A stretch of DNA of 64,000 bases from Takakia lepidozioides (GCA_030704615.1 CM060731.1:66278001-66342000), one strand, 5' to 3'; shown: positions 2,979-63,913, counted from the stretch's first letter. The notes: a model not told the origin generated them from the letters alone. Made by a program: numbers and translations.

Positions 2979-3520
2979 TAATATGGCATTCACGTAGGTC
3001 GCAAATAGATCTCACTATTTGTTAAGCCAGAAAAGCATCAAAAGAGAAAAAAGCACTCCGCAGACTAAATCTCCCTCCTATTGGGGCTTTTCTCTGCCTC
3101 CCACCCCGAGGCTAGAGTGCGTTTCCTGTGGCGCCTCTCCCACACCTCCCACCCCGAGGCCGGTCTCCATATCTGAGCACTGACTAGATGCATTCGCCGA
3201 CGGGATCCAGGTAGTCACCGAAACACACCGCCATGAGCATATTATCCATACACGCTGAAGATGGAGATCCAAGCGCTGATCCAAGTCTAATGAGAGTTCA
3301 CTTGCTACTCAGAATCATAACCTCGCCAGAAAAATGGAAGCTCCAGAAAGCTGTAATGCGTACCTTAAATGAAAAAATGGAAGCTCCACAACGCTACTCA
3401 TAGTGCGTACCTTGAAAGCAAATGGCAGCCCGATCTTGGGGCATCTCCACACCTCCCCGCTGCTCTGTCTCTCTCTGCCCGTCTCCAGTCTCGCGAGTCT
3501 CGCCACAGCTCACAGGCGGG

Positions 3521-9600: not shown

Positions 9601-10055
9601 TTCCTGAACCCATTAATCACGTTATTTCTCAAAATATTGCACCACCTCTCTTTACAGCTAGTGGGACCAGTGATTTCTCTGCTCAGGATAGTGGCAACTG
9701 CTTTCCAAACTTTCGAAGCATCTTCCCTCAGAGTGCTCGGTCTCTAGACTCTGGTCTTTTATTGGACGCCAACCCTGTTTCCTTTTTAGAGCCTGTTGTT
9801 GGTCCTTCCTCACTCCATACCTACCCTTCTCCCCCCCTTCCCCCATCCATATCTGCCGCACACCCTTTTCCCCATAGTGCTGCATCCAATGGCAGCTCTT
9901 TTGACAGAATTGCTCCTCGCCCTTCAAGTCTTGACATCAACCACAAATCTCGGTCTCTCTTCAGCAATCCAGCTTCCTCCCTGTATCAATCATATGACAG
10001 TAATCAGGACAATGATGAAGAGCTTTCAAAGTTACTTGCGTTGCTGCAAGGATGA
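6669..10055 (+). CDS. Intronless ankyrin-repeat + two CCCH zinc fingers + RRM putative RNA-binding protein (about 1128 aa from ATG 6669; the ORF track starts at TTG 6645)
   Basis: Uninterrupted 3.4 kb ORF. Ankyrin repeats at about 7780-8240. Two C-x8-C-x5-C-x3-H fingers with TIS11-like lead-ins (YKTVMC..., FKTKLC...) at about 8670-8925. RRM with RNP2 KVFVGGL and RNP1 RGFGFVVF at about 9060-9300. Ser/Pro-rich low-complexity linker and tail. MHGTGGS matches the paralog's MPGTGGS, supporting the start. Confidence 0.92.
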   Translation: MHGTGGSKDVLRKGPKQATSVVEMAGRLEEELLSSRLHVKWDLDTPASVIVEKLREKDLAVLQSLEKKCKDQLVAIAFKLARGLKVAPFVALLLVARSSVVNSIEKKTDSAVNGAARKSDSAGTLVAKKADAVANVVAKQAESFSFPVAKKVDTVVNGVTKKIDSTVVSLVGKMVDAPDDCLGGTLVDLLLGMALAHSTSCSSSKLAERPSKCKSYLREEGGNAWPGEASGLYRKCSADADEGFGLEIKLNDSPGEWEGTTSDSKDLKDFSKWDESFSGLKSSKDSGDWEEVTSKSRKKSGAEVKDADGKCGRTPSFGGEQERPTKPISLDDKCAAMGIGLETNCEIARKLLECLLIFGPRLSAHAQSPYLAPLLRAAQGNDETLICLLLNAGAPVNERDADGNTALHWALRQATPVNKRTVNAHVVTKLLDAGANVLTGNKLGATPVHTAAGHGHFEALSLILEKDAGGVNVMAATKETPLHYAVKNNHLLCAALLLKHGANRNVASLRNQKPLQLAPSLEMRALLLVDDKTLREQSWESIMASLALVSSQSSPLFSLAPLQPQFESQISCISETSTPSFLPSSSHFASHPSSQAWLNSRSTSAPQLGPSPLSQWLQSPSLSPSPPSLSASSQDGNPFDWLTAQSQFISGRELGQVGEGKDSVNLPQYKTVMCRFFASNEGCAWGSKCHFAHSGDELLSADRFESLDMRAAAGQGDGDGGDQAVKNFKTKLCTHYEKTGKCPHSLKCMFAHGSGELRAFSSFSSIRPVVKSEVGTSTSNSLGSTGSNDKNDDDISARKVFVGGLPHFIQYEELWEFFDQEFGKVVDAVVICGVDADGNTCSRGFGFVVFEDPKHADIAVRRHYLPFRGKKVEVKRATARVDYNDDPSKLTSSLSSSSLSRPVSSGSSRSVVGLSKQEVPVPTPTSATVPQQAWSLPPLAVDSGHSLGNGIQPSSDRVPFFREQGAPQFDPSNSGQYFPEPINHVISQNIAPPLFTASGTSDFSAQDSGNCFPNFRSIFPQSARSLDSGLLLDANPVSFLEPVVGPSSLHTYPSPPLPPSISAAHPFPHSAASNGSSFDRIAPRPSSLDINHKSRSLFSNPASSLYQSYDSNQDNDEELSKLLALLQG

Positions 10056-15499: not shown

Positions 15500-17720
15500 G
15501 AATACGTTCGGATTCATCCAAGAGGGCCGGAATTCAAGCTCCAGAGAGGTCCATGCTGCCATTGAAAGCTGGAATCGTGCCAACTATCATTCTGGACACT
15601 ACTGTGGAGAACATGTATGCCAAGTGTGAAGAATGCAAAGGCAGTGTTCGATAGTATGGCTTAGCGAAATTAGTCTCTTGGAATCTGATGGTCGCAGGGT
15701 TTTCCCAGCATGGATGTGGGATGGAGGCATTGGAGACTGTACGATGTGAAGAAGTTTGTCCATCGTGTGTGCTGCTTGTGTCTGTAGTCAAGTAATGTCG
15801 GATTGGTCTGTGTGAACCACCACGGTGCAGCTAAGCAGGCAGAGATTGAAACACGGCCTGCTAAGACCAAGCTGACTCTCCCAAGAACCTTCTAAACATC
15901 AGGAAGAATACCAAATCATGGTACTAACAGGAGCCAAGAGCCCACATGATTGGGTGTTTCCTAGAACAAATCTAGGCTGTCATTGTCAGCTGCTAGCAAC
16001 AATGACAAAGATGAATGTATGATTTGTGCAGAGGCATGGATAACTGAAGGAGAAGGGATAGAGTGTGGGTCCATATATCCAAGAGGGCCAGATTTCAAGC
16101 ACAAGATTACGTATGATTTCCTGTGGATCAATAGCTACAAGAAACCTGCATGCGTAGATGGTCAATTAAAGGCAGCAGCTGCAGCGGCACAGTTGATAAA
16201 ATCAGGCACCTCAACCCTGACCACAACTTCTGGAAGAGGATCAAGAGAGGGAGTCCACAATGCCTCTTCTGGCACTTTTGGGCATGCGAAGATGCTTTGT
16301 GAGGCAGGCAGACTGAAAGAGGCTCTACAGACTTTAAACCAAAGAAGAATTTCAGCAGATTCAGATACGTATGTCTGTCTCTTGTATAAGTGCATCAAGA
16401 TGAAAGGCCTTGAAGCTAGAAAGCAGGTGCACACAAGGGGTGAAGCCCATCCACATCACGTTCGTTTGTGTTTGCAATACGTGTGCAAGCCCTGGAAAAG
16501 GGGAAAGAGGTTCATGATGACATCGTCAAAGCTGGAATTGTACCAGATGTCATTCTAAACACTGCTCTGCTGGACATGTATGCCAAATGTGGAAAAGGGC
16601 AAAGAGGCCTACGGCGACATTGTTAGAGCTGGAATTGTACCCGATGTCATTCTGAACAATGCCCTCGTGGACATGTATGCCAAATGTTGGAGCATCGAGG
16701 ATGCGAAAGCAGTGTTCAACAATATGGTTGAATGAAATGTTGTGTCGTGGAATGCGATGTTTGCAGGGTATGCACAACAGGGGCGCGGGATGGAGGCTTT
16801 GGAGACGTGTGAGCAAATGATGGTGGAAGGGGTGAAGCCCGACCACATCATGTCTGTGCGTTTGCAAGCCTGGCAGCCCTGGGAAAGGGCAAAGAGGTGC
16901 ATGGTTGCATCGCAAAAGTTGGAATTGTACCAGATGTGATTCTGAACAATACCCATGTGGACATGTATGCAAAATGTGGGTGCGTCCAGGATGCGAAGGG
17001 AGTATTTGACATTATGGTTGAACAAGATTTGGTGTCGTGGAGTGCGATGATTGCAAGGTATGCATAGCAAGGGCGTGTGATGGAATCTTTGGAAACCTAT
17101 GAGCAAATGATGGGGGAAGGGGTGAAGCCCGACCACATCAAGTTTGTTTCCGTTTGCAATGCTTGTGCAAGCCTGGCAGCCCTGGAAAGGGCAAAGAGGT
17201 CCATGGTGACATCGTCAAAGCTGGAATTGTACACTGCCCTGGTGGATATGTGCACCCTGTGACAAAGCAGGTGCACACTCACATTATCATAAGTTGCTCA
17301 ATTTGTATGGTGTTCAACTGTTGCGGGCATCACCTTAGTAGTTTTGGAGCGACTGTTCCCACTGATAGTCAGGTGCCCGAGGAACTGGAACAGCTAAAAA
17401 AAGGTCTTAGTCGGAAAGGCTGGAGCCTCTTTGTTCATACAATCATACAGTATTCAAGACAACAATATATGATTGCAGGATCTGCTCAGCATGGTCATGG
17501 TCTTTTTAACTCTTTCAGCACATGCAAAGAGAAGGCATGAAGGCAGATAGTGTCTCCTTTATTAGTGTCCTCAACGCTTGTGCTGGCCCGGAGGCTCCTT
17601 GCCAGCATCATCAAAGCTGAATTTGAGTCAGATGTTGGACTCGGGAATGCCCTTGTCTCAAACTCTTTCAACAAATGCAAAGAGAGGGTGTGAAGCATGT
17701 CTAACAAGTATGGACATTCA
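15500..17720 (+). pseudogene. Decayed PLS-class PPR gene fragments
   Basis: Repeated LVDMYAKC, VSWNAM.AGYAQ.G.G and [23 protein letters not shown] motifs broken by stops and frameshifts. N-terminal leader plus the first repeat (MLCEAGRLKEAL...DSDTYVCLL) at 15983-16435. Confidence 0.85.
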
Positions 17721-32000: not shown

Positions 32001-35000
32001 CAGTAGCCTTGAGGCCATAGAGACCGCACCAGGACCAGACACTAGCTTTGTGAGGGGCTCACTCCAGTAGTAGGACTTAACTTGATAGTTCAGGCTTTCC
32101 AGATTTCCTCTAGAAAGCCCTTCACACAAGCATCAATCTGCTGTGCATGAGCTGTCAAGCAATTACACCCCAAGAGGACAAGGGCTTTCAGCTCAGCCTC
32201 GAGATTTTGAACAGACGTGCAGGAACTATGTTCTTGATGGTCCTGAAGAGGGTCACTCTCTGACGAAAACACCCCGGACATTGTATCAGAAAATGGATAT
32301 TGACTTCATGCTGCCTGGACATCGGGCCTTGACAATCTCCTTGTCCTCTCTGCATCTGTTTATTGTTCAAAGGTAGACTCCCCGCCCTGAGTTTAGATTT
32401 CAGTGTAGTGCCGAGGGTAGGCAGGCCCTTGACTTAAGGTCCTCCCCTATGTCACAACCTGGACAAGTCCAGGAAAGTTTCATGCCTAACTTTGCCTTGT
32501 TCGGTCATTCTTTGTGCTTCCGAAATGGCCTTAGACAGTTTCAGCCTCCAAGTCAGCTTCGTCTAGCAGGGTCAGTTCTTCCTGCCTAATATTCAGGTAA
32601 TGTCCTCTACTTTTTCTGCCGGGACGGTCATGCTCCCAAGAAATGGAATCTATCAGCTTGGGTATCTGGTATTAGGCATGCGATTCAACTAAACCCATGT
32701 CAAACTGCCCCCTGTTCAAGATCCCCTCCTCCCTCCCCACGGTCATTGAAGGCTACCACCGGGCATTTGCTAATATTGGCTTCTAGCCTCCACAGGTACC
32801 TCTTTGCACAAACAATCAACTCCTGAAGACTGGATGTGGTATCCCCTAAGCAAGCAAAGTCATCTCCATATATACTCTTCGAACTGTCCTGTTTCTTTGT
32901 CATCCTAAGCAGCATTCTATGCGCTTCAAAGCCTTGACAAGTTACTTGCTTATGGCCATACTGCAGCAGTAAGGTGAGTGTACCTTCACCTCTTTCCTGC
33001 TCGTATCCCAAATCAGAAGAACAGCCATGACAGGTAGAGATATAGGGAGGCGTACTAGGTTAACCACTTAGGGCCACCGAGTCTCTCTGTTTACCCGTTC
33101 CATTCTGGTCACAATTTTTCAACAGAAAAACAGGACCAGGCAATTCCTGAGCGGTGTTACTAGAACCTAGTCACATTCAAAGAGAGAGAGAGAACATTAG
33201 CGCATGCTGGTGAAGCATCAACACCTTGAATAGCATTTTTATTTTGATCAATCTTCTCAATGGCCGGAATACTAAAAGCTGCTGTCTTCCCAGTCCCATT
33301 CTTCGCGCGGGCCAGAATGTCAATCCCTGTCAATGCAATTGGGATACTTTCTTCTTGTATTGGAGACGGCCGTTCAAACCCCTTCTCAAAAATGCCCATC
33401 AGCAGCTCTCGCTTTAAGAAGTAATCCTCAAATTCGTTTCCCTTGGTTGCTGTGACATCCTGTTATTCACCAAAAACTGAGGATGGACTCAAGTGACATC
33501 AACACATTCCTGAGATAGACAAACAGTTCAGGCTAATTCCTAGCGGCAGTTGAGGCCCTGCAGCGCTATCTGCCTGATAAACTAAAGCCACTTTTGTATA
33601 ATGTCTTCACTGTCAGGAGTCCCACCCACCCCTTTGGAGAACAATTACATCTTCCTATACAACTCGTCTATTGAGAAACTCGCTGCTAAGTTGGCTTGGG
33701 GCTTGTAACGAAATTCATTTTTCAGTTGCCTTGGATTGTACATGATCTGGACACATTCAAGTGATTCTGTATTGTTTGCAAGAAAGTCACGTGGAGCAAT
33801 ATACTGACAATTCAAATTTTTGGAAAATTAGGTGTGGCATTGTCCTGCGGTGCAAAATTCTAGAAGTTCCCCATACTGATCTTTCTCCTGCATACCTCAG
33901 TCTTGTAACGGGAATCAGCAGGGGGTAATTTGAGTTGAGATTTCCAGTCTTGAGAGCTGCAATGGACACCCAAAATTATACAATCAGTAACAAGCTCCAA
34001 CATGCCTCATGACTTGATAAATTTGCAATTGTAGCATAGTCAGCTGGAGTTTCAGCACTGAGCAGCTTAGTCTGGCTTCACATCCTCACACGAAACGCAA
34101 TGTACATACATTGCATGCCATAGGGACGACCTCCATATGCATGACACATCATAAGTATCCATTAACATAACCCTTTTTAAAGAACCAAAACATTGAACCC
34201 AGAGGAGAGTATACAGGTGTGTAGAATATTTGCTTAAGCATCAGTATCCCATGGGAAGTAGATCATGAGGATTCGAGTCATCTCCCCATAAGGGATCACT
34301 GTCACTATGTTTGCATGCTTATTCAGAGCGAGCTCAAAACCCTACTGCACGATTTGAAGACAAACTACACAGACTGATTAACAATGAAGACAGACTGCTT
34401 CAAGACAGTTGAGAGGGAGAGATTGGAGTGGGAAACAACATTTCACTTGATCTCAAGTCAGCAATGCTCACGGGTAGTGCTCACCAAAACACTTAAGGTA
34501 GCTTTACATGTGGGCGACAAATTGCAGAAATACATTTGTTTGAGTACATCAACATGCTGAGAAGAGTGTAGAAGACAGGCAACCTGATACCACATACTGA
34601 GAGAAGGCAAGCGGCAACCAAAAAGGGAAACAAAGATGGGATGAAGTAGAGGGGGTACTTAGAAATAAAAACAAAACTAATTTCGACTGCGACAGAAAGG
34701 CTCCGAGGTCATAAAGTTCCCACTCAGTAAATATACTTCTCCATACGCAACGAACTTAAAAAATAGAGGATCCAAGCTGTACAGGAAAGAAGGAAGATGC
34801 TGGCAAAGTGAGAAAGGTAAATGTGACGTGCAGAAAGAAATGGTCAATACACAGAAGGAGAAACAACACCAGATGCTCCCAGACAGAAGGTAAAACCCGA
34901 AAGACCGACAAACGCTGCTGGGCAAAGGGAAAGATGCAGAAAATGCATCAGTAGGCAAACACATTGACACACTGCAAGACTTTTGGAAGAGTGGCGCCCA

Positions 35001-37285: not shown

Positions 37286-37293
37286 TTACTTAA

Positions 37294-38465
37294 CCCTCAA
37301 GTGCCCAGACTCATTCTCACCCTCTCGTGGAAAAACATGACCCTGGCCCACAAAAACATTTTTATCTGGAAAATCTCAGTGTCCCTGTAAAACTGACCGT
37401 TGGAATTACTTCCCACCTACCCCACCTCCTGCCACAAAAAGTTTCATCAAATTCCAACTGCCAGATCAGAAGATTATAAAGTGTAGAGTGGGGACAAAAA
37501 AAACTCTTCACTAAGAAATAGGTGCCACAAAAAGCAGTTTTTTCCTCGTATTTGGGCAGTTTTAATTTCTCTTTTTTTGAGAGTCTCAAGAATGTTGTAC
37601 ACACATCCTCATAATTTTTCAGTTTTTTCTGAAATGTTCTCAAGTGGGCTCCTTTGTAGTGACAAATTGGGGGTCAAAATATGCCATTTTCTTTGGGCAG
37701 GCCAAAATATCTCTTCCTAAAATTATACAAACAAATTCAGCCGTTCAATTCCTAATCCCTCCGGTTGAAGTGTCATGAACATCCATGTGAGATCCCAAAA
37801 AAAGTTTGGGACCAATCGGTAATTGCCCTCACATCTTTAGGTTCCCTGCCCAAGACTTCAAATGGCACACCTAGGTTATAGCCTGCAGGCCTAGGATATT
37901 TGGAGCCATAGCCCAGAAGGGCAGGGGGTTTGGGAGCTCCTCTGGCTTACCCGGCCCTGCTTTCATGGGGGCCACTCCACTCTCAACCCTCTCAAACCCA
38001 GCCCTCGAGCTCTTCCGCCATCGTGGCTGCACTCCCTCCAGCCCGCCCTGCGTGGCGTTGGCCGGAGCTGCCATCGCCGTCGATTCAGGCTAGGGCCCAG
38101 GCCTGGGAATGCCCAGACCTGCGCGGGCGCCATGCCCCTGCCGGGCAATGGGTTTGGGGGAGCATGCCGCCCTAACCTTAATGGGGTAACTTTCAGTCAC
38201 CCTAACCTGACCGCACTTGCCATGTCAGCAACTTGGGCAGGTTAGGGGGGGCAATTTGGCCTCAAAAAGCTGAGTGTGCCCCCTTCCAATTGGTCCAGAC
38301 CCATACCCCTTCAGGCATTGACCAATTGGCCAATGCCATATGAAGGGGGACCCAATTTTCTATCGATTGAGCCCAGAAAATGCCCAATCAGCCTTAACCA
38401 CATGAAGTTATGGCTGGTTAAGCAAACCCAATCGACCCAGAATGGGTCGTTTGGGCACTTAAGGG
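37294..38465. mobile_element. Non-autonomous piggyBac-like element (1172 bp) with TTAA target-site duplication
   Basis: TTAA (37290-37293) + CCCTCAAGTGCCCAGAC ... GTTTGGGCACTTAAGGG + TTAA (38466-38469). The 17-bp TIRs have 2 mismatches and CCC/GGG termini. No transposase ORF inside. Confidence 0.8.
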
Positions 38466-39389
38466 TTAAGCACAGGATCAATTTGCTTGGCAAGTAGATT
38501 CAATGTTGTTAAATAATAGGTGCTCTTTCAATGAAATGGATTATTTTGTACAAGCTTGTTCTTATTTCTACCAAATTTATTTCTCAGTAGTAAACGGATG
38601 AGATGGATAATAATAAAAAACCCCATTGATCCTGCACCTTCGCCGGCAAGTTTCACAATTTTTACTTCCGTGTGATGTCACCATAATTGTTTTGAGATAT
38701 TGCGCATGAGGTAAAAACCCTCCCAAACAGCATCTGATGTCCATCATAGGTTCAACCACCGGTCCCCCCGGAAGTCCCATGTCTCCCTAGGGTCACTTTA
38801 GACTTTGGACCTGCGACCATGAAACCTCCCCGACCAATTTGGGTCCAAATCTTGGCCCCTAGATGCATGTTTGAAATATTAATATCCTAGGGACCAAAGT
38901 TGATGTGTGTAAAGGCCTTGACCAAGACCAAGAAAACCCAAAATGAGCCCTACATATCACCTTCCATCACATTCACCTTTTTCATTCAACCTTCAAGCTT
39001 GACTCTCACTGTGGTCATTAAAAATTATGTTTCCATGTTTATTCAAGGTCTAAGAAGGCCAACAATCTCCCCCCATAATCGCCACCTAGATGCCATATCA
39101 TTCCTAATTCTCTTTGGTCCCTACTGTAAAGCCAATATGACCGAGAAATGCCCTTGACCAAAAGAAGAGTCGTATTTTGAGTTGGTCTTGGTCCCTAGTC
39201 TAAAGTGGGTGGATACTATCGACCAAGAGGACAAACAGATCATAACATTGACATGTAACATACACTTATATAGCTTTGAACCCAGCCTTGCGCCCTAAAG
39301 TACAACAAATTACTGTTAGGTTTTTTTAATATCATTGCTCCAAGTTCATAAAAATTTCATAGAGGCATTACTACAAATCTAGAAAGTCC

Positions 39390-50928: not shown

Positions 50929-53720
50929 TTCTAGTGACGACTGAAGGTCGGAGACTAGTTTAAGCGTAGTGCAGGAATAGGGTGTAATAGTACTACGTCA
51001 TCGTCGTCACGTTAGGTAGGCCACATCATCAACGTATATTTTTGAAACTGCCCAGACTGCCCCCCAAAAAAACCGAATTATGATTTTTATTTTTATTTAT
51101 TTTTATTTTTGGGTCAAATCTGCTCAAATATTACTTCTTCTCTTTCATTTGTTTCTTCACATATTCAATGTAAATTTTATAACAATTCTAAACATAATTT
51201 TGGTTTTGTGATAAGCACATTTTAATTTACTAATATTATAAGATAGTACATATAAATATGATAATGGTAATAGCTAATGAAATGTCAAGATCTTAATATT
51301 GAGTTTTTGTCTCTTGTCTACATTTTGGATAAAGTAAAATATAGATTTATTAATGTATTATAATTATACAACGATAAATTCAAAAACAATCATATTGAAA
51401 ATAAAATGAATAAATGCAACACCATTAATAAACCCAAAAAAATGTATTATTGCTAAAAAGGGAAAAAGAACACATAAATTCGAAAACTCTAAGAATAATG
51501 TACGAACTTAATGCATGCATGTGATCTCAGACATGATGCCGGTTTCCGGCATATCAAATCTTCCTCACCCCCTCTTGCAGATTGGAACGGGGTTACACTC
51601 GAGTGATGAGATGACACGGAATGAAGTGTAACTCCATTCAGTGTAATCCCCACTTGGAGTTACATTTGGTCTTGAAATTTAACTAAATCCAAATTAGGGA
51701 AATATAAAGAGTATTAGGAGTAGTTACACAAGACAGTAGGTGACATGAACCATAGAAGCCAAGGGTGACACTACCACTCATCATGAATCAAACCTTGCAT
51801 CTCATCGTCTCCATTACCATCACCTTACCAATATGCTGCTTACCACAGTTTGGCAATATCTTGCAAAGTATTCAATAGTGAATCCACGAAGGAAGAAGTT
51901 GGGAGGATTTGACGGGGCCAGCCAAAGGAGCCCATGCCACCTAAATCCGATGAATAAACCATCATATCGTATATGTGCATTAAGTTCTTATATTCTTCCT
52001 ATTGTTTTTTCGCATAAAATGTATTTCCAATCAAAATAAAATAAATGTTGAGCTTTTTGTAAAACTTTAATTTTGTTCCTAGAAATAATACGGAGCAACA
52101 CACAGCTCTAGTTTTAGTGACGACTGAAGGTTAGAAACAAATTTAGTGTAGAACAAGAATAGGGTGTCATCATCGTCAACCATGACGTCATCGCCATTAG
52201 ACAAGTGCCCGATTTTTTTTTAATTTTTATTTTTAAACTTTTGAAAATGTCTCTTGAGAATCTACTCTAATGTCGCTATCTTCATTTCTTTTTCTTCACT
52301 TCTTCAATGTAAATGTTAAGGGGCAGTGGAAATTTGGGAACTCTCCTCGACCTTTCTTCACGTTCACCGCAAAGAAAGCTTACAGTGCGCTTAAGCAACC
52401 CCTCTCTATGCCAAATGGAACACTAGATGGGGGCATGCTAATTTTGTGTTGGAAAACTACTGTATCTAGAAATTGATATGGGAAAAAAACAAGCCTGCAA
52501 AGCTCAGCGCCTTCTTATGGCAGATTGCCAATAGGATATTGAAAGTAGGACAGTTCTTGGCTTTCCAGGACGCAATTTTATGCAGATGTTGCTCGATTCA
52601 AACTATAGAAAGTCTGGAACACTGTCTCCTCTACTGTTTGACACCACTGGCAATCTGGCACTTGGTTCTGGCATTCTATCATCCCTGGGGATCGCCACCT
52701 CAAGGGCCCATTGCCCTGCTCCTCAATTACAATAAGAGAGAAAAAACAAAAGCCTCGGAATGCCCAGTTTATGAAACCCTTAGATCAGCTACCCTATTGC
52801 ACTTATGGAAAGCCAGATGTAAATGGTCCTTGGACTCTCACAACACCTCAGTCACAACAAATCCTTACTCAGGTTTTCTTTGACTTGACCATTGCTACCA
52901 AACACGCATGGGCTGAAATGTGTGCAGAAATCGTCAAAAAAGACCCCAACGTCAGTTTGCTCTCTTCAACACCTTTCAGGCGACCTGGGGAAGAGACAGA
53001 CTCATTTGCACATGCTCTGATTCAAGCTCATGCGAGTGGCCTTTAGGAATTCCCATCTCTTGGAGGCATCACTGGTCCTTCATCTTCAGCATCCCCGGAG
53101 TTTGACAAATCGGACATCAATTGGAAACATGTAAAGGTGGAATCTCGGGCACGGCTGCATTTTCATGGATAGACACCATCAATTCTGTTGCTTTCTCTAT
53201 ATCATAACCCCTGTCTTGGCTCATTCTTTGTGTTCAACCTAGGCTATCCTCTTACCCACGTAGAGCTCTCTAGTCTCGTCAGACTGCTACAGTCTACTTT
53301 GTCTTGCATCTTTCAATAGGAGCTCCTTACTGGCTTAAGTCTCTGATCACTTCCAGGTCATAGATTCGAGCTCTAGTCTCAAGCCTCATGTCAAGCATTC
53401 AGTCATAGTTCGCATGGTATCTCCAACACGGTTCTCGTGTGTTAAGCCTCATGGCAGCCTACAGGCATGTAAGGGTTTTAATTTTTTTCCCTGCAATAAT
53501 TATCAATAAAACTAACAAGGGCTCCAAACCCTTTCACCAAAAAAATAAAAAATAAAAAATAAAAATGTTATAACAATTCTAGATATAATTATGATAAAAC
53601 CACCAAAATAAACTCAATAGTTAAATGCCCAATTTTTTAATTACTAACCTGTTATGATAGACATAAATTAATAAATTATAAATATACATCAACAAACTCT
53701 ATAATAGATACTAAATGTAT
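50929..53720. repeat. Two copies (starting about 50929 and 52111) of an AT-rich hairpin-ended repeat; the second is interrupted by a LINE
   Basis: Both start tt(c/t)tagtgacgactgaaggt and share ...ttcaatgtaaat(t/g)ttataacaattcta.a.ataatt. Confidence 0.7.
52319..53562 (+). mobile_element. 5'-truncated L1-type LINE (zf-RVT region + 3'UTR + A-rich tail) with 8-bp TSD AAATGTTA
   Basis: IW...PAKLSAFLWQIANRIL...CRCC...ESLEHCLLYC...IW. AATAAA then an A-rich tail at about 53505-53562. aaatgtta at 52311-52318 and 53563-53570. The empty site can be rebuilt from the sister repeat at about 51165. Confidence 0.85.
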
Positions 53721-54769: not shown

Positions 54770-55042
54770 AGCACATGCCCGACCTCATTCATCTGCCCAG
54801 ACAACCTCTTTAGCTCAGCATGGATTTCCTCAATTTGTGGATGCAGTTCGTCATTTACAACCTCTGTTCTCCATCATCTTTCTCACCTTTGCTTCATCGT
54901 CCCACCTCCCAGCTGCATCATAGATGTTTGAGAGCAGCACATAGCTGGCTGCAGGGGGGTGTAGATCTGACTCAGGAAGGCCTTTTGTTGCACGCTCGGC
55001 TAGCTTCAAATCGGTGTGAACTCTACAGGCACCAAACAACAC
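54770..55042 (-). pseudogene. PPR C-terminal fragment (E domain and start of E+/DYW)
   Basis: LFGACRVH...SYVLLSNIYDAAGRWDDEAKVRKMMENRG, followed by QIEEIHAELKRLSGQMNEVGHVLD. Confidence 0.8.
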
Positions 55043-55314: not shown

Positions 55315-55939
55315 TTACACACAGGGCACACTTAAACGCTTCATTCAAGTTTTCTCTCTATAATGAATTAGTAACCACCAGTAATAATGAAAAGACAAAG
55401 CTCTTGATTCTCTTGGGATATGGTCTCGAGACTCGACCACAATCCATCTTGTTTCCCATCTTTGGCCCTAGGTCCTACACTGATCCTAATGCATGTGGAA
55501 GTCAGGATTGATGAGTTGACTTATGAGTCATGAATGGTCTCAATGTTCAATAGAACTTTATTGGATTTGTACTTGGGGGATGGAATGATGGAAGAGGGTA
55601 TTGAGATTCGAGACTCTTTAAGAGGGGTCTTTGAAGAATGTAAGGCAGAAACACCCAAATATGAGCGTGACCTTGAATGGACCCCTATTTTTGTGTATAA
55701 AAGTGACTTCATAGGTCCTTGAATGGATGGATAGAATCAAGTGATTTATTTAAGGTCTACCCCTGGGGGGTGCACTCCTCATTAAATGTACCAGCCACGT
55801 GCGTGCACAGGAGGGGGTATTTTAAACCCCCCCATGTACAACATTATACATACAGAGGGGGGTTTAAAACACCTTAAATATAATTTTACAGGAGGGGGTT
55901 GTTGAGTTTTAAGGGATAGTGTAGTGGTAAGAATGACGT

Positions 55940-57680
55940 TTACGCCGCGATGCACCGCGGGATCGAATCGCGGGATGGTCGTTTTGTTTGTTTGTTTGTT
56001 TTTTCGCTCCACGATCTTTCTCCCCTGACCTCCCGCGGCTTTCTCTTTTCTTTCTCGTCCTCTCCCGCTTTCGCCTTCCCTTCCGCGGGCTTTCTCTTTT
56101 CCCTCCTCTCCTCTCCCCTCCTCTCCACAGGGCATGGTAGGACAATGTGGTGAGGGCACCTTCTTCTTCGACCTATTTCAGTAAGCTCATTTCCCTTTGA
56201 ATGCCTTGCTGCATAGGCTCGTTGTTGTGCCTTCTGTGCTGAACCTACATTGTCCCGCAATGTGCTTTGAAGCTCATGAATTAGCATGATCTCTTCCTCC
56301 ATCATCATTCGCCTTGCTGCCTGGTCAACAGTGAGCTCCACTAGCTCCGCAATCTGTCGACACCTGTTGTTTTCTGGTTTTCCATGAATTACAATTATTC
56401 TCTGCCTCAATCTTCCGGTCATGTGTTCCACCAGATCGTCGGGCAGATCGTTGTATAGCGCCAGGTGCGCCCAACATCCTTTCTTTTGTGTCCAATGTCC
56501 ATAGATAAACACAGATGGCAGTTTCTCCGCTCCTCCGTATTCTTCCGTCACTGAGTGCAGCAATCGCGTTTGTAGTTCAGTTATAACTGCTGCCCCCCAT
56601 ACATTCTTCCCTTCACTGCACGTGGTGCTCATGCTTGACGTTTCATGGGTATGTTCTCCAGTGCTCGTCGTGTATGTTCTACTTTCGCCATTTGCCGTTG
56701 CATTTCCGCTTGTGAGATTTTGCCCTGCTTGCCTTCTCGTTCTTCCCTTGTGTAATTAGGCTCTTCACCAGTCTGAAAAATAATACCCTTCTGCCTTCAA
56801 ATGCACCTTTTCTTTACATCTTTCGGATCGTGTTTGAACCATGTTGATTCGGGACAGGTCTCTCTCCTCATTCACCATATGTCACAGCTCCTTGCCAACC
56901 AGCATCCCTCGGCAGATATTCCATGCTGCCATCATGTTGCTCCACTTACTCGTATCTTTAGTTGTAGTGACAGTTGCTTGGTTCGCCGTTGTGTTTGCAG
57001 CCCGAAGGTCATCCCACACCTGCTCAGCTGCTCTTCTGCTTACTGGGTACCCCTGTTGCGTTCTTGTGATCTCTAGCATATCCCAATTAGCAGTAAGTGA
57101 CCTCATTGCGCCTCCCTTCCTTTTGCACTTGCACTGTATTACCCTCCTTTCACATACAAAGACTATAGTTTCCTTCCCTTGCTTGTGTAATTGCTGATTT
57201 CTTCAAAAGAAAGTTGTTTCATTGCCCCTAAGCAACTCACTGTATCAGGCCTATTCTCCTCCTTATCATCCCTCGCCTTTTGGAAAATTCCAGCCATAAT
57301 TGAAAGGCAATTGGTTGCTGTACTTAACTGCACAAATGTTCCCCTTTCCGTTGGAATGAGTTGCACGTCATTTCCATGCTGACATACCCTTTCTTCTTCC
57401 TGCAGGATCCTTTGCCCAACCCTGTTATTTCTATCATTTGTGCCATCCTCTTGGCGTTTCCACAACCTCCCCTCATTGCCAGTGAAGTGTTTCCTTCTCT
57501 TCCCTTTGTCTTTAAAGACACTCCAATCTTAGCTGCAGTACCCTTCGCTGATTTCTTATTGCCTTTGACCTCATGTATGTTTTCAATCATGTTTGAAGGG
57601 TGATCACCTGCTGCCATATGCATGACTGTGTCCTTGACTGCTTCTCTTGTCTCAGTATGATGTTTAATTGTTGTCATGTC
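55940..57680 (-). pseudogene. Broken ORF chain of unknown, probably TE-borne, protein inside the TIR element
   Basis: Consecutive minus-strand ORFs 57324-57677, 57163-57465, 56882-57106 and 55940-56632 with protein-like composition. WGAAVITELQTRL is reminiscent of plant-mobile-domain motifs (weak). Confidence 0.35.
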
Positions 57681-57689
57681 AGGCCATGC

Positions 57690-60265
57690 TCAGCTGCACC
57701 GTGGTGTCTTCGTGGTGGTTTGGAGTGACTTTGCAGGTACTGCCGATGTGGCAGCAGGAAAGTACCCAAAAACAGATAACAGAGATGACGATAAGCTTTG
57801 GAATGAACACTTTTCTGACATGCAATTCAGAGTTGGAACTACTGTAATAAGTAGGGTTTGGGGTGTTTACTGAAAGAACTTCACGCCGTGAGTGTCAGCT
57901 GCTAAGAGCAAGGCTGAGGATGTATTCATGATTTGTACACAGGCAGGGATAGCTGAAGACCAGGGATAGAGGTCCAGATTCATCCAAGAGGGCCGGATTT
58001 CACACACAAGATTATGTCTGATTCCCTGTGGATCAATAGCTACAAGAAATCTGCCTGGGTAGACGGTCAACTGGAAACAGCAGCGGCAGCAATGGTTGTA
58101 GAGCAAGGACTACTGATAAAGGTACCTTCTTCAACACATTTGTGGTGAGGGCACCTTCTTCTTCGACCTATTTCAGCCTGTTTTTCCCTCTCATCAGACT
58201 CATTAGCTCATTGGGATGATCTGTGGTGGTTTGGAGTGACTTTGCAAGTTACTGCCGAGGTGGTAGCAGGAAAGTACACAAAAACAAATAACAAATTGTA
58301 CTCATAAGACGTTGTTTGCCGTAGCCTTGTGGCCATTGACCCCACGCACAGTTTGAGCGGGAACAAAAGGGACAGAACCTACCTCTGTCAAGGGCTGCTG
58401 TGTGTGATTTGCCCAAAAACTAGGCCTCAGGAGGGCCTAGGCTTTTGGCTTAGCCTCAAGACTTTCAAAGTTGGTAAACAGGGGTACAGGCACAATTCCC
58501 TTGATAGATTTGAAGAGAGCGTCTCTTTGGTGAGAGAACCCTGGACAGTGTATCAGAAAATGAATATTGTCTTCAGATTGCCCACACAATGGGAAATGCA
58601 CTCCCCCTTTCCTCTCTGCTTCTGTTTGCTGTTCAAAGGTAGGCTTCCTTCCCTGAGTTTAAATTTCAGTCTAGTGCCGAGAGTGGGTGGACCCTTGAGG
58701 TCATCCAAGATGTCCTCCCCCATGTCACTGACTAGAAACAAGTTCAGGGAAGTTTTTTGCCTAACTTCATTTTCATCAGACAATCTCATGGCAACAGACA
58801 TGGCTTTGGACACTACAGCCTCTAAGTCGGATTTATCCAACAGGGTCAAGACTTGTGGATCCAGGTCCAGGTCCTTGAGAATCTCTTCTACTCTGGTGTT
58901 GGGAAAACACCTTTTGATCTCAGTCCAAACCAGGAAGTGGTCAGAGGTACCAATATCAGTTCTGTCGATCAACACATTGGCACACTGGGGGAACAAATTT
59001 TTGTCCATTATGATATAGTCCACAATGGAACGTTCCCCAGTTTGGGATTTCTCACGAGTCCACTGCACTTGGTCACCTCTTGTCTTGTTATTCAAGGTCA
59101 AAAGCTGAAGCTCTTCCAGACAGTTAATTAACCGTCTGCCATTAGAATTCAGCTCGTCCTCACCAGAAGACCCAATGATATCGTCCTGATGGAGCCCTTT
59201 GCCCACTTGGGCATTGAAGTCACCCTGCAATAGCACCACAGAGATGAAGAGAAGCTTTGGAATGAGACACTTTTCTGACCCCAGTCAATGGTGGGACAAT
59301 GTGGGTGGATGGTCAACTGGAAACAGCAGCGGCAGCAGCGCAATTGATAGAGCAAGGCACTGCTGATGAAGGTACCTTCTTCAACACATTTCAGCCTGAG
59401 GGCACCTTCTGGTTTGACCTGTTTCAGCCTGTTTTTCCCTCTCATCAGACTCAGCCCTGAAGCATATGTATTGAATTCTGTAAGTTAGCTCGTTGGGTGG
59501 ATCTGCGGTGCTTTGGAGTGACTTTGCAAGTTACTGCCGAGGTGGCAGCATGACAGTACCTAAAAAAAGATAACAGAGATGGAGAGAAGCTTTCAAGGAA
59601 TGAATACTTTTCTGACCCCAGTCAGTGGTGGGACAATGTAGGAGATGGTCAACTGGAAATAGCAGCGGCAGCAGCGCAATTGATAGAACAAGGGACTGCT
59701 AATGAAGGTACCTTCTTCAACACATTTCAGCCTATTTTTCCCTGTTATCAGAGTCGTCCCTAAATTTCCAGATGGCCGGATTCCAAGCTCCAAATTACCT
59801 ATGATTCCATGTGGAAGGATAGCTACAAGAAACCTGCATGGGTAGATGGTCAACTGGAAGCCACTGTAGCACCTGCAGAGGCATGATGTACGCATTGTTA
59901 GTGTGGAGGGAGGGGTAGCTGTTGATGCAGGGAGAGGATCGTGGGTGCAAAATCATCTAAGAGGGCCAGATTTGGAGCAAGGAACAGCGCTGGCAGGAGT
60001 TCTATAAATATGATCCACAGCGGTGGGACAATATTGTCAACAAGGTGAGCTTTCTTCATGCAACATCGTAGGGAGTTTGACAAAACTTTGTATTTAAATA
60101 TGTTAGTGTGGAGGGAGGGCTAGCCGCTGATGCAAGGATGGACTGTGGGTTCAGGATCACCCAAGAGGGCTACCAGCAGTGGAAGTAGCAGCACTTGGTC
60201 AATAGCAGCAGCAAGAATTAGCAGCGTCAAACTCATCAATCAGGTACTTGCTTCTGTACACATTT
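57690..60265 (+). repeat. Scrambled tandem array of modules related to the PPR N-terminal leader
   Basis: ttggagtgactttgca x3 (about 57720, 58231, 59513). ggtcaactggaa x4 (about 58065, 59311, 59647, 59848). aagagggc x3. Homologous to 16000-16200 and 53950-54140. Confidence 0.8.
58294..59237 (-). mobile_element. Internally deleted LINE: AP-endonuclease fragment joined to the C-terminal/3' region, reverse transcriptase missing
   Basis: ORF 58553..59239 has GDFNAQVG, SIVDYII and SDHFLVW (APE motifs), running directly into TRLKFKLREGSLPLN (also seen at about 32380) and the family 3' end. It splits one array unit. Confidence 0.8.
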
Positions 60266-61202
60266 CATCCTCTTATCAACGTAGTCCCTGCTTGGACAGC
60301 CTATAGGGCTGTATAAAACATGACTTTGGAACCTTCTTTGACAACTTTATCAAAAGCAAATATTTTTTTTAATTAATTTGTTAGATTTTATTATGTTTTA
60401 AATGAATAAATTCGATATAATATAAAAACATACATATACATATTGGAGGGTTATTTTTAATGATGGAAAATGAGAATATACATACAGAAGGGGGTACTTT
60501 TTAAAAATTGTAAATTTTTGTATATTTACAGGAGGGGGTTTTATAATCTTCAAAAGTATGTACAGAGGGGATATAAATTATCCAAGGACCCGTATACAGG
60601 GGTTTTTTTTTATTAGGCGACGAACGCACGTGATACGCACAGTTTATAAAGAGTGCACCCCCCAGGGGTCTACCAATGGCCAGAATTACCTACAGTTAGG
60701 GTGGTTTTACAACTGAACGTGTACACATCCATGTACTTATTGGATTTATAACTGCACGGTTTTAATAGGGACACTTTCAACATCGAGGTCCAATGCAGTA
60801 GACGACGATCAGAAAACTGCCAGAACTGACGATCAAAAAACTGCCGGTACCCTAATGCATTGGTCTTGTCGAAATAGACTTGTCGAACGGCCTTGATAAG
60901 GAGACGAAACCATATGATAAAACCAAGCCATGTGGTGTATTTCCAGCGCGGGTGTAACATCTGGAAATTCATCTCGAATCCACAGAACAAGGGCCTAGAC
61001 CAGGACATTGACAACTATGTAAGGAAAAAAAGCCAGATAGTCGCAAAGAAAAAAATGTGACAACACGGAAGTGGCACTCGGCATCTTAAAGAACAATGGC
61101 AATGTGCACATGTACACCTTTTCCATAGACTCCAATACCACTCATGAATTTAAGTCAACGAGGAAGATGAAGGTAAGCTTACTTAGAGCCTTACTACCAA
61201 CT

Positions 61203-61410
61203 ACCTGCTTTACCCCCAGTGCAACGATACAAGCTCCCCACGAGCTCCTGCGTTAACCCCAATGTAGCGATACAAGGTCCCCGCGAGCACCTACTTTACC
61301 CCCAGTGCAACAATACAAGCTCCCCGCGAGCTCCTGCGTTAACCCCAATGTAGCGATACAAGGTCCTCGCGAGCACCTACTTTACCCCCAATGCAGCGAT
61401 ACAAGCTCCC
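61203..61410. repeat. Roughly 42-bp (84-bp dimer) tandem repeat, about 5 monomers
   Basis: tttacccccagtgcaac.atacaagctcccc.cgagctcctgcg alternates with ttaaccccaatgtagcgatacaaggtcc.cgcgagcacctac. Confidence 0.85.
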
Positions 61411-61649
61411 CAGGAATATCATGATCCCAGAACTGGGGGGGAGTTGAACCCCCCGATCTGCCCATTGTGCCCCCCCCCAAGCAGCAAGCATCACCCCCAA
61501 AAGCAGAACCACTACCGTGACTGTTGCACTGCTGCCCCGCCCCCACCCCCCTTCCCCAAAAGTGTGAAACCACCCAAACACAATGCTCCTACACCAATAC
61601 ACCCAGACCCCCATCACCTCCACAACCCTTCAACCAACATCAGCAGATC

Positions 61650-61830
61650 GACATGACCCCCACAGCCTGTGAACCATCAGCAACACACCCCCACATGACC
61701 AGCACTGCCCATGAACCAACAACAACACACCCCCATGACCCCAGAAGCCTCCACTGCCCATGAACCAACAGTAGTACACACCTATGACCCCGAGAAGCCT
61801 CCACTGCCCATCAACCAATACCAGCACACC
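61650..61830. repeat. Degenerate 42-50 bp tandem repeat
   Basis: atgacccc..agcctccactgcccatgaaccaaca repeated about 4 times. Confidence 0.7.
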
Positions 61831-62011
61831 CCCAGTACCCCTACAGCCACCACAGATCAGCGAGAAACACACCCCACGTCCCACGCACACACGCCATCCA
61901 CAGCCGATGCCAGCATACCTGCAATGCAATCCAACACAGCAGCGAACCCCCATCCACACAACCAATGCACACACACAAGGAAGAAGTAACCACTGAAAGG
62001 CCTAGCTGCAG

Positions 62012-63913
62012 TCACCTCGTGGCATGTCGGTGTGCCCCATTCCGACATGGGCCAAGGCACAAGTGGCTGCCATCACAGCCAGGGCAGTAATAGTGAGTAC
62101 GAACTTGACACACAACACACAAACGCCGCCTTGTCGTGTGAAGGCACTTATGCACAAACGTGCATTCCACATCCCCAGTGGTGTCCATGTTGTTAGTGCA
62201 GCAGCCCGCTGTCAATCCGTATGCCAAAACCAGATTGAATTCGAGATGTGTCATGACCGGGCGCCCCATCCTTCTCTCCATTGCAGAATGCAATATATAC
62301 GCATTCACCACTGTGGTATCCAGAAGAAAGAAAACCCCACGATGCCACCACTTCTTTGTGCGCAGTTGCAAGCTATACGCACCCCTCAGCTGGTCCTGCA
62401 CATCTACTCCTCGCATATACGTTTGGTATTGCACGTGAGCAGGCACGGATGACACAGACACTCTTTGGTTTCCCACAAAACGGTGTACAGTCACAGGAGA
62501 GGAAGGGCTGCATGTTGGCCCGGCTGCAGTGACAGTAAAAAAACCCCATTCTTCTCCCACCATAACAAAGCAGCCACCTCCCTTGAATCATGCATCCTGT
62601 ACCATGACTGCCCTTGCTTGACAGTCTTGGATTTCTTCATTTTCAGCAAAGAGGGAGGGAGACCCTTTCGGTTCAATCTGACTGTGCCAGTGGCCCAAGT
62701 GCCAAGCTTCGCCAAGTCATACAGAAGCTGACCAGAGGTAAAGTAATTGTCAGTGACAGTGATATGGCCCAAACCATGCAGCCCTTCAGTCAGCCGGCAA
62801 ACAACATCGTACCCTTCTCCCTTCCCACTTTTCTGCCTCTGGCCATCTGGCCCTCCTGCATTCTTACCAGAGTAAAAACAGAAATTGTAGACATATGAAG
62901 TCTCCGAGTCAGCAGTGGCCCACACCTTTATGCCCCACTTGCATGGTTTCTTAGGCATATACATCCTAATTGGACGACATCTCCCCTTCTAACGAATCAT
63001 GACCTCATCAACGGTCACCATTTTGTTTAGATTCCAAAGGCTTTTACACCTATCAACAATCTCATCACACACCCACATTAGCTTTCCAAGCTTGTCGTAA
63101 TTGCGATTTTTCCGATCCGCCACCAAAGTGGCGTTGTCAACAAGATGCAAACAGCGGAGGATGGCCTCGTACCTATCTCTCATCATCACTTTGCGGATGA
63201 CAGGACAAAAGAAGAATTGCTCCGAATGTTGCCAGTACAAGCGAGTTCGGGGTAGCTTCTTCATGCCCATGAAGACACAAATGCCAATCCAAGCCCTCAA
63301 CTCACGAACAGTGAGGCTCTTTCCACTTAGGCCCCCCACGAGTGCCCGCACCCAAAGCCTCACATGCATAACGATTGGACTCCCTACATATCCGTGCAAG
63401 CACATGTTGTCTCCAAAACAAACGAAAGAACCAAACAAGATGTGAGCCCTTTATATCTGGCAGGCAAGGACCAGGTACAGGGCCAGTAACAACACCTCTA
63501 TCAATTGCAAACTCAGAGCAAACATTGGACTCCCTAGTCACATGCTTGAATATCTTGACAAAATCGGCGGTTGGCTCCTCATTGCACTCCATGTCAATCC
63601 CATCATTCTCCTAGTTGCATTCATCGGCAGAGTCCCCCATGTAGCCATCGTCACCCTCAAAATCCTCATCCATGTCCGACGAGGCCTCATCATGCCCAAA
63701 ACTCCCATTAGTAGACCCCTCCCCAAAATTCACAGTACCCCGCCCAGCACCCCCAGTATTGGGATGCAACTCCCCCAAAGCCACCCGACCCACGGCCACC
63801 ATCCTCCCCGGACTCAGAGACCCGCCAACACACCCCACATTCACCGGCAGACCACCAGCCTCTCCCCCAATCCCAGAATTCACTCCATGACTAGTTTTTT
63901 TTCCTGATGACAC
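62012..63913 (-). mobile_element. Decayed piggyBac-superfamily transposase; the element continues past the window end
   Basis: Catalytic-triad motifs VTVDEVMI, VTDNYFTS and MRGVDVQDQ. YMPKKPCKWGIKVW, ATGTVRLNRKGLP, KKWWHR and VVNAYIL. C-terminal Cys-rich domain CVVC...YYCPGC...LC.GPC. In-frame TAG at 62989 and 63611; frameshifts near 62530 and 63320. Confidence 0.9.

Follow-up and report, generated by a model that had tools for sequence, protein, structure and literature searches.

A probable Pack-type DNA transposon carrying PPR-leader pieces in Takakia lepidozioides, with a target site duplication that is exact at four lengths

We describe an element of about 4.9 kb in Takakia lepidozioides (positions 55760-60668), which is probably one insertion of a non-autonomous Pack-type cut-and-paste DNA transposon with terminal inverted repeats (TIRs) and a patchwork of foreign cargo. 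All positions are counted in the window, i.e., the whole 64-kb stretch of DNA that was analysed (CM060731.1:66278001-66342000). In some early land plants the set of PPR editing-factor genes has grown enormously, and DNA transposons that scatter pieces of PPR genes are a possible route to new N-termini, to pseudogenes and to sources of small RNAs. The element offers a clean example, where the PPR cargo is leader-only and where only dead fragments appear to be carried. A lesson of method has the greater weight: with a quasi-palindromic target, the length of the target site duplication (TSD), and hence the superfamily, is unreadable from one copy.

Structure of the element

The features of the element, together with a piggyBac MITE of the same window, are collected in Table 1. 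The perfect 18-bp TIRs that the preliminary description had reported are present, and sequence CCCCTGGGGGGTGCACTC has just 2 matches in the 64 kb when up to 3 mismatches are allowed, both of them at the element ends, as compared to 0.07 expected; no further TIR copy is present in the window at this threshold. Beyond the perfect TIR the inverted similarity of the two ends continues imperfectly, extending to 45-51 nt and taking in the inner CACGTGCGT. A metagenome scan with a 25-base composite TIR pattern gave 0 matches. With a 16-mer of the TIR, at least 119 metagenome matches were obtained, which are considered to be due to chance, none of them extending past about 20 nt. For the flanks, no paralogous empty site was found within the 64-kb window.

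Table 1. Coordinates of the element's features and of a piggyBac MITE in the window
Feature	Position	Strand	Remarks
Left direct repeat GGTCTACC	55754-55761	.	8 nt; reaches with two bases into the TIR's CCCC
Left TIR CCCCTGGGGGGTGCACTC	55760-55777	+	perfect; 18 nt (4-bp reading) or 16 nt (8-bp reading)
Inner inverted repeat CACGTGCGT, left	55796-55804	+	9 nt, 18 nt inward of the TIR
Left subterminal motif cluster	55807-55900	+	ACAGGAGGGGG-type motifs at 55807, 55852, 55888 (+) and 55827 (-)
Orphan open frame	55943-56755	-	271 codons; last ~65 low-complexity K/E/R/G from a CT-rich tract
PPR-leader unit 1	57680-58293	+	compared with the N-terminal leaders of PPR pseudogenes 15983 (+) and 54139 (-)
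Internal LINE fragment	58297-59237	-	mid-endonuclease to upstream of RT; lacks 5' end, 3' end and poly-A
PPR-leader units 2 and 3	59238-59900	+	tandem, ~336-nt period, 91% identical to each other
Two more partial, diverged leader-type units	59896-60170	+	~205-nt period
Right subterminal unit	60476-60540	+	motifs at 60484, 60528 (+); runs in the same direction as the left-end unit
Inner inverted repeat CACGTGCGT, right	60624-60632	-	9 nt; spacing to the TIR identical to the left end (18 nt)
Right TIR	60651-60668	-	perfect 18/18 inverted match to the left TIR
Right direct repeat GGTCTACC	60667-60674	.	8 nt, overlaps the TIR end
Genuine piggyBac MITE	37290-38469		TTAA on both sides; TIR CCCTYAAGTGCCCARAC, unlike the element's

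It had also been claimed that the subterminal motifs lie mostly in the same orientation at both ends, and this is borne out by the motif ACAGRRGGGG, the 5 matches of which in the window (0.69 expected) share the + strand and keep to the 190 nt next to either element end, 3 of the 5 being no farther than 140 nt from the left one. Moreover, a subterminal unit of about 60 nt (left copy 55845-55900) is common to both ends in direct orientation, having a score of 48 versus 17.4 ± 2.1 for shuffled sequences.

The cargo contains, as had been described, an array of PPR leaders, with at least 3 units similar to the leader at the N-terminus of PPR (pseudo)genes; of the PPR N-termini, only residues ~25-80 are matched. 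Unit 1, in which a PPR motif is absent, has 77-81% DNA identity and 63% protein identity (E 5e-16) to the leaders of the two pseudogenes given in Table 1. No parent PPR gene could be identified for the cargo, the PPR pseudogenes in the window being only 77-81% identical in DNA to the leader units. The deleted LINE of the preliminary description is also present, as an endonuclease fragment (Exo_endo_phos_2, E 3e-6, Pfam) from which both LINE ends are missing and around which there is no TSD. With neither of its ends present, the LINE piece cannot owe its position to target-primed retrotransposition alone.

The third component is an orphan frame near the left end, with 208 codons outside the low-complexity part, a length that is reached by 0.2% of 1000 shuffles. 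It has no homologues in Pfam, the ESM Atlas, a word search and 1.84 billion representative proteins, and its AF2 model has a pLDDT of 42. It is noted that spurious ORFs spanning the left terminus and a 230-aa ORF have no match in the protein collection, their own locus included, and that exact look-ups likewise gave nothing; as these ORFs do not match even themselves, the locus is absent from that collection. A transposase domain is not present in the interior, where Pfam, applied to all ORFs of at least about 80 aa, finds only the LINE endonuclease piece. At 55905-55975 there is a stretch that resembles a tRNA, but ARAGORN and Rfam do not recognise it.

Target site duplication

The longest direct repeat flanking the element is of 8 bp, and the TSD can be read exactly as 2, 4, 6 or 8 bp, i.e., as CT, TCTA, GTCTAC or GGTCTACC, while the 10-bp reading fails with 8 of the 10 bases matching. 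The four readings give TIRs of 19, 18, 17 and 16 nt, respectively, with the terminal bases being ACCC, CCCC, CCCT and CCTG. The target is the quasi-palindrome GGT-CT-ACC, and because of this quasi-palindromic character all four readings are exact. The preliminary description had given an exact 4-bp TSD and CCCC ends; it is true that TCTA flanks CCCC ends, but since the readings of 2, 6 and 8 bp are equally exact, neither the 4-bp TSD nor the CCCC ends can be taken as established. The signature that had appeared as a novel one, with 4 bp and CCCC, is thus one among four equally exact readings.

The readings of 4 and 8 bp can be compared by the coincidence that they would require. A true TSD of 4 bp would need the 2 outer bases on each side to match the end bases of the TIR by chance, with a probability of 1/256, whereas a true TSD of 8 bp would need only that its first two bases complement its last two, with a probability of 1/16. 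The 8-bp TSD GGTCTACC, with the termini CCTGG..., would then be the most parsimonious reading, that of 4 bp being 16-fold less so. The empty site before the insertion, as deduced, would read ...TTAAGGTCTACCAATGG....

Origin of the element

Because the element is bounded by TIRs and a TSD, has no transposase and has an interior of foreign pieces, its identity as a Pack-type non-autonomous TIR transposon, which had been proposed before, is supported; the patchwork consists of the PPR leaders, the LINE piece and the orphan frame. The features by which Pack-TYPE elements are known, namely TIRs with a flanking TSD, an interior free of transposase and fragments of host genes inside, are all found here, in a single copy in the window. 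A gene-scavenging transposon is an already known kind of element: the Pack-TYPE transposons include Pack-MULE, Pack-CACTA and Pack-hAT (PMC8903248, PMC6379663). Like these, the present element is non-autonomous, has TIR and TSD bounds and has an interior of shuffled and duplicated fragments, taken from host genes and from other DNA (PMC8903248, PMC6379663); unlike these, its gene cargo consists of PPR 5' leaders and not of complete sets of exons.

We propose the following pathway. The transposase would act in trans, coming from an autonomous relative that is not seen here, and would recognise the termini of 16-18 nt, with the inner CACGTGCGT repeats and the ACAGGAGGGGG subterminal motifs probably taking part. 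The interior would have been acquired as DNA: PPR genes would have given pieces of their 5' leaders and a LINE an internal piece, the orphan open frame being exon-like. The most likely route is template switching or gap repair, which has been proposed for the Pack-MULE and Pack-CACTA elements, and the cargo would have been tandemly duplicated after the acquisition. What is read as capture may in part be the decay, at a later time, of an element that was once larger. The 4.9-kb unit would have been excised and then inserted at GGT-CT-ACC, where the cut would be staggered about the central CT. Judged from the sequence, nothing indicates any function of the cargo, which seems to be made of dead fragments only.

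Another scenario can be considered, in which nothing was captured: the element was autonomous at first and its transposase was lost, while nested insertion and rearrangement brought in the PPR and LINE pieces at a later time. In this scenario the orphan frame of 271 codons near the left end could be the relic of the element's own gene, and the diverged, tandemly duplicated interior would also agree with it. However, the orphan frame resembles no transposase, nor any of the representative proteins searched, the LINE piece, having no TSD and no poly-A-bearing 3' end, does not represent a retrotransposition event, and the PPR-leader pieces have no mobility of their own. We consider the later entry of the pieces unlikely.

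Superfamily

The termini of the element fit no plant superfamily cleanly. The superfamily is not assignable from one copy, for which the stagger may be 2, 4, 6 or 8 bp. The termini are neither CACTA-like nor PIF-like. In the hAT superfamily, the consensus is a TIR starting with YARNG and a TSD of the pattern nTnnnnAn. The element has an exact 8-bp direct repeat, although TSDs of 2, 4 and 6 bp fit as well, and it resembles hAT in the short 16-nt TIRs, in short subterminal motifs that occur on either strand and in the typical size, but differs from it in that the TIR starts with CCTGG rather than YARNG and in that the 8-mer GGTCTACC, whose second base is G and whose seventh is C, does not fit nTnnnnAn. 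The Mutator-like elements, to which Pack-MULE belongs, have long TIRs and a TSD of 8-11 bp, usually 9. As compared with them, an 8-bp TSD is possible and one of 10 bp fails, while the TIR of the element is far shorter than that of a typical MULE.

It is also conceivable, though we regard it as having little likelihood, that the element belongs to another superfamily, i.e., Sola or Ginger1 with 4 bp, GingerRoot or an IS3EU-like one with 6 bp, or a 2-bp type. Every even reading of the TSD from 2 to 8 bp is exact, and clusters of Sola and Ginger are present in plants (PMC12973397). The TSD alternatives listed in the preliminary description were incomplete in this respect, leaving out Sola and Ginger1, both of which have 4-bp TSDs and are recorded in plants (PMC12973397). 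Note also that GingerRoot, which among plants occurs only in bryophytes and lycophytes, has mostly GC-rich TSDs of 6 bp and carries gene fragments (PMC6839031), and that a 6-bp TSD is one of the possible readings for the present element. By contrast, the ends of GingerRoot are TA...TA or TG...CA with TIRs of 100-150 bp (PMC6839031), whereas those of the element are CCC...GGG, with the perfect TIR being 18 nt long, or 17 nt in the 6-bp reading (~45-51 nt if imperfect pairing is included). Moreover, no remnant of an integrase-like or Sola-like protein was found inside the element.

The preliminary description had proposed a possibly undescribed gene-capturing, piggyBac-related family, and a piggyBac transposase is indeed present where it had been placed, about 1.3 kb away: its coding sequence (DDE_Tnp_1_7) begins 1.34 kb to the right of the element. 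This neighbour is a frameshifted pseudogene split over at least 3 overlapping frames, around which there is within the window no TIR matching that of the element, and which possibly has a TTAA-CCCC end of its own. When its piece 62494-62964 was used as the query, two fragments only were obtained, with 40% identity. The right junction also has an inverted match of 16 nt to 63705-63720, which falls within the piggyBac coding frame, has no extension and is judged to be due to chance (~0.07 expected).

The termini of piggyBac are of the form 5'-CCY...RGG-3', with short TIRs. This form fits the 4-bp (CCCC) and 6-bp (CCCT) readings of the element but neither the 8-bp (CCTG) nor the 2-bp (ACCC) reading. 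A gene-capturing piggyBac-related family having CCCC ends and a 4-bp stagger at the non-TTAA site TCTA would agree with the CCC- or CCCC-starting termini, with the TIR length of 18 nt, which is typical, and with the inner repeat behind a spacer, which recalls the terminal-plus-internal repeats of piggyBac. TCTA also retains the outer T and A, the pairing of which is singled out as required (PMC7351741), and piggyBac insertions at TTAG are on record (PMC3064801).

Against this, the TTAA that defines piggyBac, which is used "almost invariably" (PMC7351741), is absent from the flanks, TCTA deviating from it at both central positions, and the 4-bp TSD is one of four exact readings, 16-fold less parsimonious than that of 8 bp. 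In addition, the genuine piggyBac MITE in the window is flanked by TTAA and has a different TIR, CCCTYAAGTGCCCARAC. According to the Repbase rule, a non-autonomous element should have the same TSD length as a classified element and at most 1 mismatch to it at positions 1-11 (PMC4455052); with this MITE, the sole reference compared, the first 11 terminal bases of the element agree at 5 positions, which is outside the rule (PMC4455052). Thus, while the element is like piggyBac in the CCC-type termini of the 4- and 6-bp readings, its short TIRs, the possible 4-bp stagger and the piggyBac copy next door, it is unlike piggyBac in having no TTAA, in its termini differing from those of the MITE and in that no piggyBac transposase is linked to its TIRs, the adjoining one being broken. 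With the TSD ambiguous and TTAA absent, neither the piggyBac affiliation nor an undescribed superfamily is supported, and the piggyBac-related origin is improbable. If the termini belonged to a CCCC-ended piggyBac-type family with a transposase accepting any two bases in the centre (T-N-N-A) and mobilising Pack-type derivatives, which we would hardly expect, no earlier land-plant relative of piggyBac would be known to capture genes.

Finally, that the element is not a transposon and that its apparent TIRs and TSD come from an inverted repeat arisen by chance or from some local rearrangement, as its single copy in the window might suggest, is very improbable in view of the 18/18 inverted match, for which 0.07 are expected in the window even at up to 3 mismatches, the exact flanking repeat, the inner inverted repeat at identical spacing and the motif clusters confined to the ends.

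The element and its termini

The element at about 55760-60668 is a genuine, cleanly bounded, non-autonomous transposon with terminal inverted repeats (TIRs), known from one copy, and its interior is a patchwork of leader pieces of PPR genes (the N-terminal leader of these RNA-editing-factor genes), a LINE fragment and an orphan open frame. It is Pack-type, that is, of an already known kind of transposon. The left TIR (55760-55777, +) is CCCCTGGGGGGTGCACTC and its reverse complement is the right TIR (60651-60668). Even when as many as 3 mismatches are allowed, the 64-kb window contains just these 2 matches, where 0.07 are expected from shuffles, and the perfect 18-bp TIRs of the preliminary description thus stand as a unique pair in the window. 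Beyond the perfect TIR, an imperfect inverted similarity extends to 45-51 nt, and a second exact inverted repeat, CACGTGCGT, is present at both ends exactly 18 nt inward of the TIR. The motif ACAGRRGGGG has 5 exact matches in the window versus 0.69 expected, all 5 being on the + strand and at most 190 nt from the element ends (3 of them at most 140 nt from the left end), and one diverged copy is on the - strand at 55827. Moreover, local alignment gives a subterminal unit of ~60 nt in direct orientation (55845-55900 and 60476-60540) with a score of 48, as compared with 45 for the inverted termini and 17.4 ± 2.1 for shuffled sequence, and therefore the earlier remark that the subterminal motifs mostly share one orientation is correct.

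The patchwork interior

Pfam detects no transposase domain in any interior ORF, and its sole match inside the element is Exo_endo_phos_2 (E 3e-6, - strand ORF 58553-59239). The LINE fragment begins mid-endonuclease at the ...GDFN... motif and stops ~0.9 kb downstream, with the RT, the 3' end and any poly-A/T tract absent from it, and is 70% identical to the LINE copy at 32138-32574. Because the fragment is without both ends, target-primed retrotransposition alone cannot produce it.

On both sides of the LINE fragment there are PPR-leader units, all on the + strand. In the ORF at 15983 their similarity is confined to residues ~25-80 of the N-terminal leader (63% amino-acid identity, E 5e-16; DNA 77.5%), and they are likewise similar to this leader where it recurs at 54139-53971 (-). 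At both loci degenerate PPR repeats follow the leader, the Pfam PPR signal at 15983 being weak (E 0.05) and the PPR ORFs at 42-44 kb being solid; inside the element no PPR motif proper is found. The proposal of a Pack-type element with a chimeric interior of PPR leaders and a deleted LINE is therefore borne out. It is noted that the decayed PPR genes at 15983-17300 (+) and 54139-53800 (-) have in common the leader of which the element holds copies. Directly left of the insertion, at 54854-55042 (-), is another PPR piece, an E-motif fragment (Pfam E_motif, E 1e-11). Between the PPR-leader fragment and the upstream DNA there is an ORF at 52473-52883 (+) with a zf-RVT domain (E 4e-6), which forms the tail of a LINE/RT element; besides this tail, the window has LINE copies near 19.4-21.2 kb and near 31.9-32.6 kb.

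The left 1.8 kb of the element is pyrimidine-rich on the + strand. About 65 of the 271 codons of the orphan frame come from a CT-rich low-complexity tract, and the length of its other 208 codons is reached by 0.2% of 1000 dinucleotide shuffles. Its codon periodicity is weak (p = 0.057), its predicted fold is poor (pLDDT 42), and no relatives are found in Pfam, the ESM Atlas, a word search or 1.84 billion representative proteins. We treat the frame as an orphan exon-like relic. Of the broken chain of unknown ORFs proposed before, this frame is longer than in shuffled sequence, whereas the others are not. Just inward of the left subterminal region, a tRNA-like stretch (55905-55990, GGGATAGTGTAGTGG...GGGATCGAATC...) is followed by a T-rich run; it is recognized by neither ARAGORN nor Rfam and may represent a decayed part of a tRNA or SINE, i.e., further cargo.

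Features of the element and its surroundings (window coordinates)
Feature	Position	Strand	Basis or remark
piggyBac MITE, ~1.18 kb	37290-38469		TTAA both sides; TIR CCCTYAAGTGCCCARAC
Orphan open frame, 271 codons	55943-56755	-	ORF length versus shuffles
PPR-leader unit	57680-58293	+	similarity to leaders at 15983, 54139
LINE fragment	about 58297-59237	-	Pfam endonuclease match and window similarity
PPR-leader unit	59238-59572	+	91% identical to unit 59573-59900
PPR-leader unit	59573-59900	+	91% identical to unit 59238-59572
Two partial PPR-leader units	up to 60170	+	similarity
piggyBac transposase pseudogene	62012-63913	-	DDE_Tnp_1_7 over at least 3 overlapping frames

Target-site duplication and affiliation

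On the left, ...TTAAGGTCTA is followed by CCCC..., and on the right, ...GGGG is followed by TCTACCAATGG... Before the insertion the site read GGT-CT-ACC, a quasi-palindrome with its outer bases complementary to the TIR ends. Enumeration by script of the exact partitions between target-site duplication (TSD) and TIR gives four: CT with ACCCC... (perfect TIR of 19 nt), TCTA with CCCC... (18 nt), GTCTAC with CCCT... (17 nt) and GGTCTACC with CCTG... (16 nt). A 10-bp TSD fails and odd TSD lengths give asymmetric ends. Thus, with four exact partitions and one copy, the 4-bp TSD with CCCC ends claimed in the preliminary description is exact but is only one reading among four. Under a true 4-bp TSD, chance would have to make the four flanking bases identical to the end bases of the TIR (1/256), while under a true 8-bp TSD the first two TSD bases would have to complement the last two (1/16). 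Therefore, assuming no target preference, the 8-bp TSD, the longest direct repeat, would be more parsimonious than the 4-bp one by about 16 to 1 as estimated from the single copy.

In hAT elements the TIR starts with YARNG and the TSD has the pattern nTnnnnAn. The element is like hAT in its short TIR, its short subterminal motifs in both orientations and, among the possible readings, an 8-bp TSD, but its CCTGG termini and 8-mer do not fit these patterns. GingerRoot, which among plants occurs only in bryophytes and lycophytes, carries gene-fragment cargo and has a GC-rich 6-bp TSD and TIRs of 100-150 bp with termini TA...TA or TG...CA (PMC6839031). The element shares with it the gene fragments inside and, among the possible readings, a 6-bp TSD; by contrast, its TIR in that reading is 17 nt long and does not have such ends. 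Sola elements have a 4-bp TSD. So do Ginger elements, and both superfamilies, which occur in plants (PMC12973397), were missing from the alternatives listed before. Nothing in this copy points positively to a Sola1-like, IS3EU-like, short-TIR Mutator-like, CACTA or Helitron2-like origin.

The piggyBac transposase noted nearby is indeed present to the right of the element: at 62012-63438, three ORFs that overlap one another have DDE_Tnp_1_7 matches (E 1e-19, 2e-26 and 5e-8). piggyBac elements are uncommon in land plants. Since its coding is split over several frames, this transposase is a pseudogene; it retains an intact Cys-rich tail at the C terminus, its 5' end is beyond the window edge, and its 3' end is possibly at TTAACCCC, 61253 or 61339, within a tandem array. 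It is not enclosed by the element's TIRs, and its proximity is given little weight for the affiliation of the element. The array (61203-61417) has about 5 units of 43 nt in two alternating variants, one containing TTAACCCC, and beyond it come C/A-rich repeats with units of ~42-50 nt (61600-61850), in the DNA that separates the element from the piggyBac gene.

The piggyBac MITE in the window has 17-nt TIRs, CCCTCAAGTGCCCAGAC / CCCTTAAGTGCCCAAAC, with which, as the one in-window reference, the element termini agree at 5 of the first 11 positions. The Repbase rule for non-autonomous elements asks for equal TSD length and at most one mismatch over positions 1-11 (PMC4455052), and the agreement with this MITE falls short of it. 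Nor is the target TTAA, the 4-bp reading being TCTA. TTAA is used by piggyBac almost without exception (PMC7351741), and the documented exceptions reviewed here are single-base variants, e.g., TTAG (PMC3064801). It could be argued that the element is a relaxed piggyBac relative, as TCTA retains the outer T and A, the pairing of which is described as essential in the structural study of piggyBac (PMC7351741). However, with TTAA missing and termini unlike those of the genuine MITE, we consider this quite improbable, and the claim of a new piggyBac-related superfamily with a 4-bp TSD, that reading being one of four, is not supported.

Further copies and other genes in the window

Terminus-spanning and interior ORFs have no match in protein collections, the TIR gives only chance matches of 16-20 nt in metagenome scans, the piggyBac piece as query gives only distant fragments, and within the window there is no paralogous empty site for the element flanks. 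An inverted 15/16 match to the right junction AGGGGTCTACCAATGG at 63705-63720 was rejected: it lies inside the piggyBac coding frame and has no extension, about 0.07 such 16-nt matches being expected by chance in the 3.4-kb region. Elsewhere, the window contains two paralogous ankyrin-repeat genes, at 1302-2993 (-) and 6645-10052 (+), the longer of which also has CCCH zinc fingers and an RRM.
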